Positions 3,404-4,966 of a DNA stretch of 64,000 bases are shown piece after piece. The translations under genes were made by a program, and so were the position numbers. This stretch comes from Chrysemys picta bellii (taxonomy: Eukaryota): assembly GCF_011386835.1 (NCBI RefSeq), contig NC_088810.1, positions 3,038,001-3,102,000 of the forward strand. The letters run 5' to 3'. The notes beneath the pieces are model-generated. The model was given only the letters and a program-made list of their open reading frames with translations. It made no database searches and was not told where the DNA came from. Each line of letters begins with the position of its first letter. Within the stretch, counting starts at the first letter, position 1.

Positions 3404-3420
3404 GAAACGAAAGTGAAACT
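3404..3420 (+). promoter_or_regulatory. ISRE / IRF-binding element upstream of the IRGC-like gene
   Basis: GAAACGAAAGTGAAACT (reverse complement AGTTTCACTTTCGTTTC) has three GAAA half-sites. A GT donor follows at 3480 and an acceptor at 4949-4950. Confidence 0.7.
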
Positions 3421-3639
3421 CTCCAGCCGGCGGGTCGCCCCCAGCGTGGGACAAGGACGGATCTGTCCCCACTCGGGAGGTAACCCCGGGACGGGGGGCA
3501 GAGGCGGGCAGACGGACAGACGGGGAAAGGGGGCAGAGGCGGGCAGACAGTCGGGGGAGGAAGCAGGGACGGGGCGGACGGGAAGCTGCCGGAGGGGGCG
3601 AGGGAAGGAGCCGGGGCCGGTGGGGCAGCCGGAGAGCCG

Positions 3640-4450
3640 CGGGTGTGGACTCGGGGGGCAGAGGGAGAAGAATGGGGGGAAGCAGGGGGCAAAAGGGTCG
3701 GAATGGGGGACAGAGGGAGGGGGAGCCGGGGGTAGACTCGGGGGGCAGACAAAGGAGGAGCTGGGGGGGAAGACGGAGGGGGGAGCCGGGGGTGGAATCG
3801 GGGAGGAGCTGGGGGGCAGACGGAGGGCAGCCGGGGGGCAGAGGGAGAAGAATGGGGGAAGCAGGGGGTAAAGGGGTCGGAAGGGGGAGCAGACGGAGGG
3901 GGGAGCCGGGGGTGGAATCGGGGGGCAGACAAAGGAGGAGCTGGGGGGGAAGACGGAGGGGGGAGCCGGGGGTGGAATCGGGGAGGAGCTGGGGGGCAGA
4001 CGGAGGGCAGCCGGGGGGCAGAGGGAGAAGAATGGGGGAAGCAGGGGGTAAAGGGGTCGGAAGGGGGAGCAGACGGAGGGGGGAGCCGGGGGTGGAATCG
4101 GGGGGCAGACAAAGGAGGAGCTGGGGGGCAGACGGAGGGGGGAGCCGGGGGTGGAATCGGGGAGGAGCTGGGGGGCAGACGGAGGGCAGCCGGGGGGCAG
4201 AGGGAGAAGAATGGGGGAAGCAGGGGGTAAAGGGGTCGGAAGGGGGAGCAGACGGAGGGGGGAGCCGGGGGTGGAATCGGGGGGCAGACAAAGGAGGAGC
4301 TGGGGGGCAGACGGAGGGGGGAGCCGGGGGTGGAATCGGGGAGGAGCTGGGAGGGCAGCCGGGGGGCAGAGGGAGAAGAATGGGGGAAGCAGAGGGCAAA
4401 GGGGTCGGAAGGGGGAGCCGGGGGTGGAATCAGGGGGGCAGAAGAGGAGC
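3640..4450. repeat. G-rich VNTR with ~180-bp higher-order period
   Basis: Lines starting 3841 and 4021 are identical. Subunits include GGAGCCGGGGGTGGAATCGGGG and GAGGGAGAAGAATGGGGGAAGCAGGGG. Confidence 0.9.
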
Positions 4451-4966
4451 CGGGGGGCAAACAGAGATGGAGACAGACTGAATCAGAGCAGGGCGGGGAC
4501 CCCCCCATCTATCCTTCCACCATCCCAAATGGGGCTGTGCCCCGGGGGGACCCAGGCAGTGCCCCACGGGGCCGGAGAGCGACCAACCCAGACTGGCCGG
4601 GGGGTGCAAACTGGGAACCCTCCCCCCTTTCTGCCTAAACCCCCAGGGATGGGGGCCACGTTCAGGAGATGTGTGGCGAAGGTGCGGGTGGGGACAGGTG
4701 AAGAGCGCAGCCCAGCAGTGCCCTGGCCTGGGTTCCTGGCTTTTGCCCACCCCCACCCCCCAGTGGCCAGCCAGTCCCCTGTCCTGGGCTGGAATAGGGC
4801 CAGCAGCCCCCATGCCCTATTCCCTGCCCCCAAGCCAGCCAGTCCGCGTGCTGGGGCTGGATAGGAGCCAGCGTCATCTAGAGGGGAAAGGCCCCGTTGT
4901 TCTGTTTCCCTACATTAACCCCCACTTCTGCATCTCTCTGCCCCCCCAAGCGCTCTCCCAAGCCCC

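Follow-up and report, generated by a model that had tools for sequence, protein, structure and literature searches.

Does the IRG GTPase gene that lies beside SMG9 in a 64,000-nucleotide stretch of the Chrysemys picta bellii genome (the window, below) respond to interferon, and is it a reptile form of IRGC? In mice, IRG GTPases are among the main effectors that interferon directs against vacuolar pathogens; humans have nearly lost them, and to our knowledge almost nothing is known of those of reptiles. No relevant report on the expression of IRGC (IIGP5, interferon-inducible GTPase 5) in turtles or other reptiles was found in a literature search, and a paper on infected python organoids and one on poly(I:C) in crocodiles mention no IRG genes in their main text. 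Inducible mouse IRG genes have a long coding exon behind a 5' untranslated exon and need ISRE/GAS elements (PMC1297648); mammalian IRGC has no ISRE or GAS within 10 kb, is non-inducible, and is testis-specific (Bekpen 2005, PMC1297648). Knockout of Irgc1 in mice leads to a defective sperm fibrous sheath, and it has been proposed that IRGC arose together with this structure in reptiles, birds, and mammals (PMC9232189). A preliminary description of the window had cited the mouse layout with its ISREs and the testis-specific, non-inducible character of IRGC, in agreement with PMC1297648, and had proposed that an ISRE stands before an IRGC-type gene, possibly in the ancestral state of IRGC.

Exon structure and reading frame of the turtle IRG gene

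At least two thirds of the sampled words of positions 4960-6660 were found in at least 14 small RNA-like public runs from six studies. The contigs of four runs from four studies, labeled organism A in three cases and organism B in one, were subsequently mapped onto positions 1200-6900. A joint leading from 3477 to 4949 was present in the contigs of all four runs, and reading it as GT..AG puts the cut two bases to the right, in keeping with the boundaries given in Table 1. None of the four runs had contigs on 3492-4446 in the interior of the intron. The shared splice joint together with the empty intron interior therefore identifies the four runs as RNA. The donor GAG/GTAACC at 3479/3480 and the acceptor AG at 4949-4950, both proposed in the preliminary description, are used in vivo in the contigs of the four studies, and the layout proposed there, a short non-coding exon followed by one coding exon, is borne out by the spliced contigs of the four runs. 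An ATTAAA lies at 6671-6676 in the 3'UTR, and the contigs have their 3' ends at 6613-6719. The contigs are uninformative on expression level.

Table 1. Features of the turtle IRG gene and of the loci compared with it. Positions refer to the 64-kb window unless a locus (L001-L009) is named.
Feature	Position	Strand	Details
68-bp minisatellite, 2.4 units	3241..3400	+	Tandem Repeats Finder; adjoins the ISRE directly
Non-coding exon 1	3378..3479	+	3' end exact, 5' end approximate; contigs start at ~3378 (X1), 3402 (X2), 3403 (X7)
ISRE/IRF element GAAACGAAAGTGAAACT	3404..3420	+	motif scan; core ACGAAAGTGAA invariant in five-turtle alignment
Intron 1, GT..AG, 1471 bases	3480..4950	+	joint in four of four runs
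G-rich 179-bp tandem array, 4.3 copies, 96% identity	3652-4418		fills half of intron 1
Exon 2: 16-base 5'UTR, whole coding sequence, 3'UTR	4951..6700	+	RNA contigs
Coding sequence, GKS-class IRG (IIGP-family) GTPase, ~412 aa without the extra G	4967..6206	+	
GGGG run, one G too many in the window	5932..5935	+	frame shifted; false 408-aa ORF ending at 6193
Gopherus element GAAACGAAAGTGAAAGC	L002		upstream of coding exon
Gopherus CTCF-motif array	L002:5620-5896		
Carettochelys element GAAACGAAAGTGAAAGG	L003		upstream of coding exon
Carettochelys CTCF-motif array	L003:4331-5030		
Chelonoidis element GAACGAAAGTGAAACC	L001		upstream of coding exon
Emydura (pleurodire) element ACACGAAAGTGAAGG	L004		third half-site weakened/degenerate (GAAG)
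Podarcis element GAAACCGAAAGT	L005	same strand	possible donor AAG/GTATGC ~175 bases later
Corn snake (Pantherophis) element AAGAAACTGAAACT	L008	same strand	720 bases before ATG, after a (GA)n run
Sceloporus partial element GAAACGAAAATG	L007		partial element only, 2.2 kb upstream
Platypus IRG, 481 aa	L009:3982-5427		IRGC
Platypus IRG, 418 aa	L009:10001-11257		between IRGC and SMG9-size gene
Platypus IRG, 452 aa	L009:18032-19390		

Positions 1773-2154 and 2919-3109 were matched by very many RNA contigs, with a summed depth of up to ~20,000, all of which continue into unrelated sequence; these two stretches look like a dispersed transcribed repeat. Within intron 1, positions 4638-4900 were matched at 95-99% by other RNA contigs, in which 4789-4879 is replaced by 24 other letters followed by unrelated sequence, and this part of the intron probably belongs to a repeat family transcribed elsewhere. 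The G-rich strand of the 179-bp array in intron 1 is the sense strand. A poly-G run at 6239 in the 3'UTR is 1, 3, or 6 bases shorter than in the window, depending on the run.

The coding exon encodes a protein that begins MADQTPP, ends ...IKAFETDV, and matches Pfam PF05049 with an E value of 1.3e-102 (residues 26-322 on profile positions 3-299). Its best matches among solved structures in the PDB were mouse Irgb10, Irgb6, and Irga6 (E 1e-84 to 1e-73). The canonical motifs are all present, with G1 (GESGSGKS) at residue 65, G3 (DLPG) at 115, and G4 (SKVD) at 172. The last ~85 residues of the ORF as it stands in the window are nonsensical, and the true C-terminus lies in another frame, with its stop at 6204-6206; tblastn likewise returned two segments in different frames across the break. 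The two protein parts were searched separately, with X or NNN standing at the break in computations. In the contigs of all four runs position 5935 is left out at full depth, giving GGG against GGGG in the window. The extra G at 5932-5935 reflects either an error in the assembly or a private allele, and the mRNA encodes an intact ~412-aa protein of the same length as the tortoise orthologue. A pseudogene reading of the frameshift was rejected, all four transcript sets being without the extra G. The one-base excess in the reference makes the gene look truncated.

The turtle protein is 90% identical to the 412-aa protein of Chelonoidis, and its C-terminal piece aligns to orthologues at 92%. Pairwise dN/dS among the reptile orthologues was 0.10-0.30, all copies examined were intact, and the turtle gene is, as judged from these comparisons, under purifying selection. 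It presents itself as a conserved, single-copy, and slowly evolving gene, unlike the fast-evolving and expanded IRG effectors of the mouse.

An ISRE in exon 1 and its conservation

The ISRE-like motif of the preliminary description is present on the + strand, where GAAACGAAAGTGAAACT contains three GAAA half-sites (Table 1). Positions 3407-3420 (ACGAAAGTGAAACT) are the sole perfect match in the 64 kb to the 14-base consensus RNGAAANNGAAACT, having 0 mismatches to (A/G)NGAAANNGAAACT and being unique in the window. The strict ISRE core GAAANNGAAACT was matched once in the 64 kb compared to 0.09 times expected from shuffles, and was found at least once in 9 of 100 shuffles. Twelve bases of the turtle element, GAAAGTGAAACT, match what we take to be the ISRE core of ISG54. 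At 3403-3412, the overlapping stretch GGAAACGAAA also agrees with the Ets-IRF composite pattern GGAANNGAAA. A GAS element was searched for in 2600-3500, and none was found. Compared to the classical ISREs of ISG54/IFIT2 and ISG15, the turtle element is located at the 5' edge of the transcript rather than ~100 bases upstream, and has a third half-site with one-base spacing (GAAACGAAA).

The position of the element relative to the transcript was examined with the same contigs, which cover 3410-3477 and carry 32 (X1), 8 (X2), or 7 (X7) further 5' letters. As 3230-3409 was masked as repeat in the contig mapping, the resulting 5' starts at ~3378-3403 assume that these letters are colinear with the genome; no contigs fell on 3110-3229. 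Counted from these starts, which cannot fix the TSS, the motif is at ~+1 to +45 or further downstream, and in three studies the ISRE is at most ~25 bases from the 5' ends of the assembled transcripts. The ISRE thus lies inside transcribed exon 1 and not in the classical upstream position. Since the transcripts include the ISRE, transcription would start at the motif or slightly upstream of it. The start at 3430-3470 suggested in the preliminary description was not confirmed, the contigs beginning upstream of that range; because they still begin near the ISRE, the start is probably not far from the motif.

Immediately upstream of the ISRE is a minisatellite, each unit of which consists of a (CA)n run and CCAGCAGGGGGCAGC, with copies of CCAGCAGGGGGCAGC at 3287 and 3355. 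This sequence agrees at every position with the CTCF consensus CCASYAGRKGGCRSY, to which the 64-kb window has 5 matches compared to 0.12 expected. Co-oriented motifs of the CTCF type are found upstream of the ISRE in Chrysemys (2 in the window), Gopherus (3), and Carettochelys (9); the corresponding array of Emydura has no perfect CTCF-consensus motif.

The comparison was then extended to orthologous loci from eight reptiles and to the locus of the platypus. The position of the motif is shared by the turtles, in each of which it comes after the CTCF-like block and the CA run, and an alignment of five turtles, the pleurodire included, revealed an invariant core of 11 bases. The remainder of exon 1 has diverged and is barely alignable in Carettochelys and Emydura. 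The single-base gaps in Chelonoidis, mostly in short base runs, are taken to be assembly errors. Synonymous distances among the compared species are 0.16-0.47, and by a rough estimate eleven unchanged neutral sites might be expected about once per thousand.

Conservation of the ISRE in other reptiles, to which the preliminary description had looked for support, therefore holds for the five turtles and, in the form of canonical IRF-E/ISRE 12-mers, for Podarcis and the corn snake, but Sceloporus has only a partial element and Gekko (L006) has no canonical element within 8 kb. The squamate elements are only suggestive as counterparts of the turtle ISRE. Homology between the lizard and turtle promoters is weakly supported, extending over 30 bases of 80% identity (E ~0.02-0.04). 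The idea that the corn snake element is a transposon copy was rejected, as the three GAAACTGAAACT sites in that locus have unrelated flanks.

Two further observations were made at these loci. Identical perfect ISRE cores, GAAACTGAAACT, are found in the corn snake at L008 14695-14706 and 14776-14787, 81 bases apart and with unrelated flanks, and this pair falls within the range of a neighboring 514-aa minus-strand gene. In Gopherus, the start ATG of a 423-aa isoform X2 (L002:6001) is located just past the exon 1 donor, in a stretch homologous to intron 1; the corresponding bases are ACG in the Chrysemys window, and this start is not conserved.

The SMG9 neighborhood and the relation to IRGC

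Examination of the window downstream of the IRG gene revealed an SMG9 exon at 12213-12527 on the minus strand, which matches solved SMG9 (E 2e-18), and KCNN-type K-channel pore, CaMBD, and SK_channel domains at 31.3-39.5 kb, also on the minus strand. The order IRG(+), SMG9(-), KCNN4(-) is also found at the IRGC locus of mammals. Between SMG9 and the K channel is a long ORF (17745-19613) with a single weak C2H2 zinc-finger match (E 4e-5). The NCBI name of the reptile genes is "interferon-inducible GTPase 5(-like)."

In the platypus, three tandem IRG genes are followed by a 520-aa minus-strand gene of SMG9 size, from which IRGC is the farthest (Table 1). The platypus 481-aa protein shares 73-84% identity with IRGC of marsupials and placentals, and its gene is, on these identities, the one true IRGC among the three. 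The identity of the turtle protein is ~50% to platypus IRGC and, over the first 322 residues, 63% to the platypus 418-aa protein, the latter being the highest to any mammalian protein. No ISRE was found in the 21 kb of the platypus locus examined. A palindromic GAS, TTCCCGGAA, is located there at L009:16972, 1 kb before the third IRG gene.

The main tree was a careful LG+G4 analysis of 37 proteins. In this tree, the SMG9-adjacent genes of turtles and squamates formed one clade (support 96/98), and IRGC, the platypus 418- and 452-aa proteins, and a second turtle lineage formed a separate clade (100/100). A quick C20 site-heterogeneous tree agreed with this grouping. The mouse tandem Irgb halves were dropped from the second tree (branch length 2.56), and the trees were made without Irga6, Irgd, and Irgm. 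Forcing the clade of the window gene together with the mammalian cluster cost 31 log-likelihood units, with an AU p of 0.027, which is only moderate evidence because the group was named after the tree had been seen and IRGC sits on a long branch. The second turtle lineage comprises proteins of 402-435 aa, and its Carettochelys copy is 4.6 Mb away on the same chromosome; in two species, no canonical ISRE was found for this lineage in the 4-6 kb before the coding exon.

At its C-terminus, IRGC extends past the Irga6-type end by up to 65 residues (PMC1297648). The turtle protein has 412 aa and is without this extension, compared to 481 aa for IRGC in the platypus and 461-486 aa in other mammals. 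Among the sampled mammalian proteins, no counterpart of the reptile clade was seen. The turtle gene is thus most likely the positional counterpart of IRGC and a member of a separate amniote lineage that was lost from mammals, and these comparisons indicate that the reptile "IRGC-like" genes are not IRGC. Of the proposed IRGC-type gene at the IRGC locus, then, the SMG9/KCNN4 neighborhood was upheld, but the IRGC type was contradicted by the tree, the AU result, and the missing extension.

Like mammalian IRGC (IIGP5, CINEMA, Irgc1), the turtle gene is near SMG9 and KCNN4, has a GKS-type G domain, and is a conserved single copy; unlike IRGC, for which no ISRE is present within 10 kb (PMC1297648), it has a perfect one. 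The gene for the platypus 418-aa protein shares length class and locus with the turtle gene, but differs in its grouping with the platypus 452-aa protein and IRGC and in the lack of an ISRE in the 21 kb. As the turtle gene belongs to a separate, reptile-only clade and lacks an IRGC-type C-terminal extension, it does not follow that it represents the ancestral state of IRGC. That part of the preliminary description is weakened, and little can be learned from the gene about how IRGC itself was regulated ancestrally.

Interferon control and its alternatives

We put a probability of about 0.58 on the reading that this real, expressed two-exon GKS-class IRG (p47 family) gene of a cryptodiran turtle has ISRE-driven interferon induction and a role in cell-autonomous defense. 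After interferon signaling, ISGF3 (STAT1-STAT2-IRF9) or IRF1/IRF8 would bind the ISRE, and the bound factor would raise transcription from a TATA-less promoter. The 412-aa GTPase produced may then act as a cell-autonomous defense protein, like the mouse GKS IRGs. With mouse Irga6/Iigp1, Irgb6/Tgtp, Irgb10, and Irgd, the turtle gene has in common the IIGP fold with a GKS P-loop, a 5' untranslated exon followed by one coding exon with an ISRE at the promoter, and a product of ~410-420 aa with no C-terminal extension. It differs from the mouse GKS IRGs in having no GAS in 2600-3500, no N-terminal myristoylation signal (the protein starts MADQTPP), and a single, slowly evolving copy in place of a polymorphic expanded cluster. 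It also lies beside SMG9 and not in regions syntenic to mouse chromosomes 11 and 18. Taken from its sequence features, the gene is probably interferon-inducible.

The same element could instead be a conserved IRF-family or Ets-IRF composite site that supports constitutive, cell-type-restricted expression, through PU.1-IRF8/IRF4 in blood cells or through IRF1/IRF2 basal activity, with little induction by interferon. Such a site would account for the fit of 3403-3412 to the composite pattern, for mRNA found across six studies in at least 14 RNA-like runs with no known stimulation, and for a protein that is slowly evolving and single-copy. However, mammalian ISREs near the TSS are usually interferon-responsive. 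In addition, the 14-mer is a perfect ISRE, which is more than a pair of IRF half-sites, and the gene family is classically interferon-driven (PMC1297648). We consider constitutive expression from such a site unlikely, although deserving of some weight.

A different function would be one in the germ line or testis, IRGC-like and without induction, with the ISRE vestigial or kept for a role in the 5'UTR or as an initiator. We regard this as improbable. The turtle gene groups apart from IRGC and does not have its C-terminal extension, the motif has been kept throughout the depth of turtle evolution, and a gene confined to testis would not usually be expected to show mRNA in RNA-like runs from six studies; these points outweigh the chromosomal neighborhood shared with IRGC, the position of the motif within the transcript, and the strong purifying selection on one copy per genome that is also found for IRGC (PMC1297648, PMC9232189). 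It appears very improbable, lastly, that the motif is a functionless chance product of the adjacent microsatellite and minisatellite. It does abut the (CA)n run and the 68-bp repeat, and the corn snake element similarly follows a (GA)n run, but a 64-kb stretch would be expected to hold 0.09 matches, the motif does not belong to the repeat unit and is present only after the last unit, and it is invariant in five turtles while the number of repeats ranges from 1 to 9.

An ISRE combined with a non-coding first exon is the standard design of the IRG family, and public annotations already include a prediction of the gene. The present analysis makes a modest but useful addition: the exon structure has direct support, the frameshift of the reference is corrected, the element is seen to be conserved across turtles, and there are indications that the reptile "IRGC-like" genes are distinct from IRGC. 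With ISRE-driven induction as the preferred reading, the locus offers a testable reptile candidate whose promoter element and exons are defined and whose protein is intact. A separate lineage is hidden under the automatic name "interferon-inducible GTPase 5 (IRGC)-like," which matters for the origin of the testis-specific IRGC. Tentatively, and at less than even odds, we suggest that the amniote ancestor had at least two IRG lineages around SMG9, of which an ISRE-driven one survives in turtles and squamates as a single, slowly evolving copy and the other lost interferon control and became mammalian IRGC with its C-terminal extension. If this were true, the "IRGC" annotated in reptiles would not be IRGC, and the proposal that reptiles, birds, and mammals saw a joint origin of IRGC and the fibrous sheath (PMC9232189) would have to be revised.
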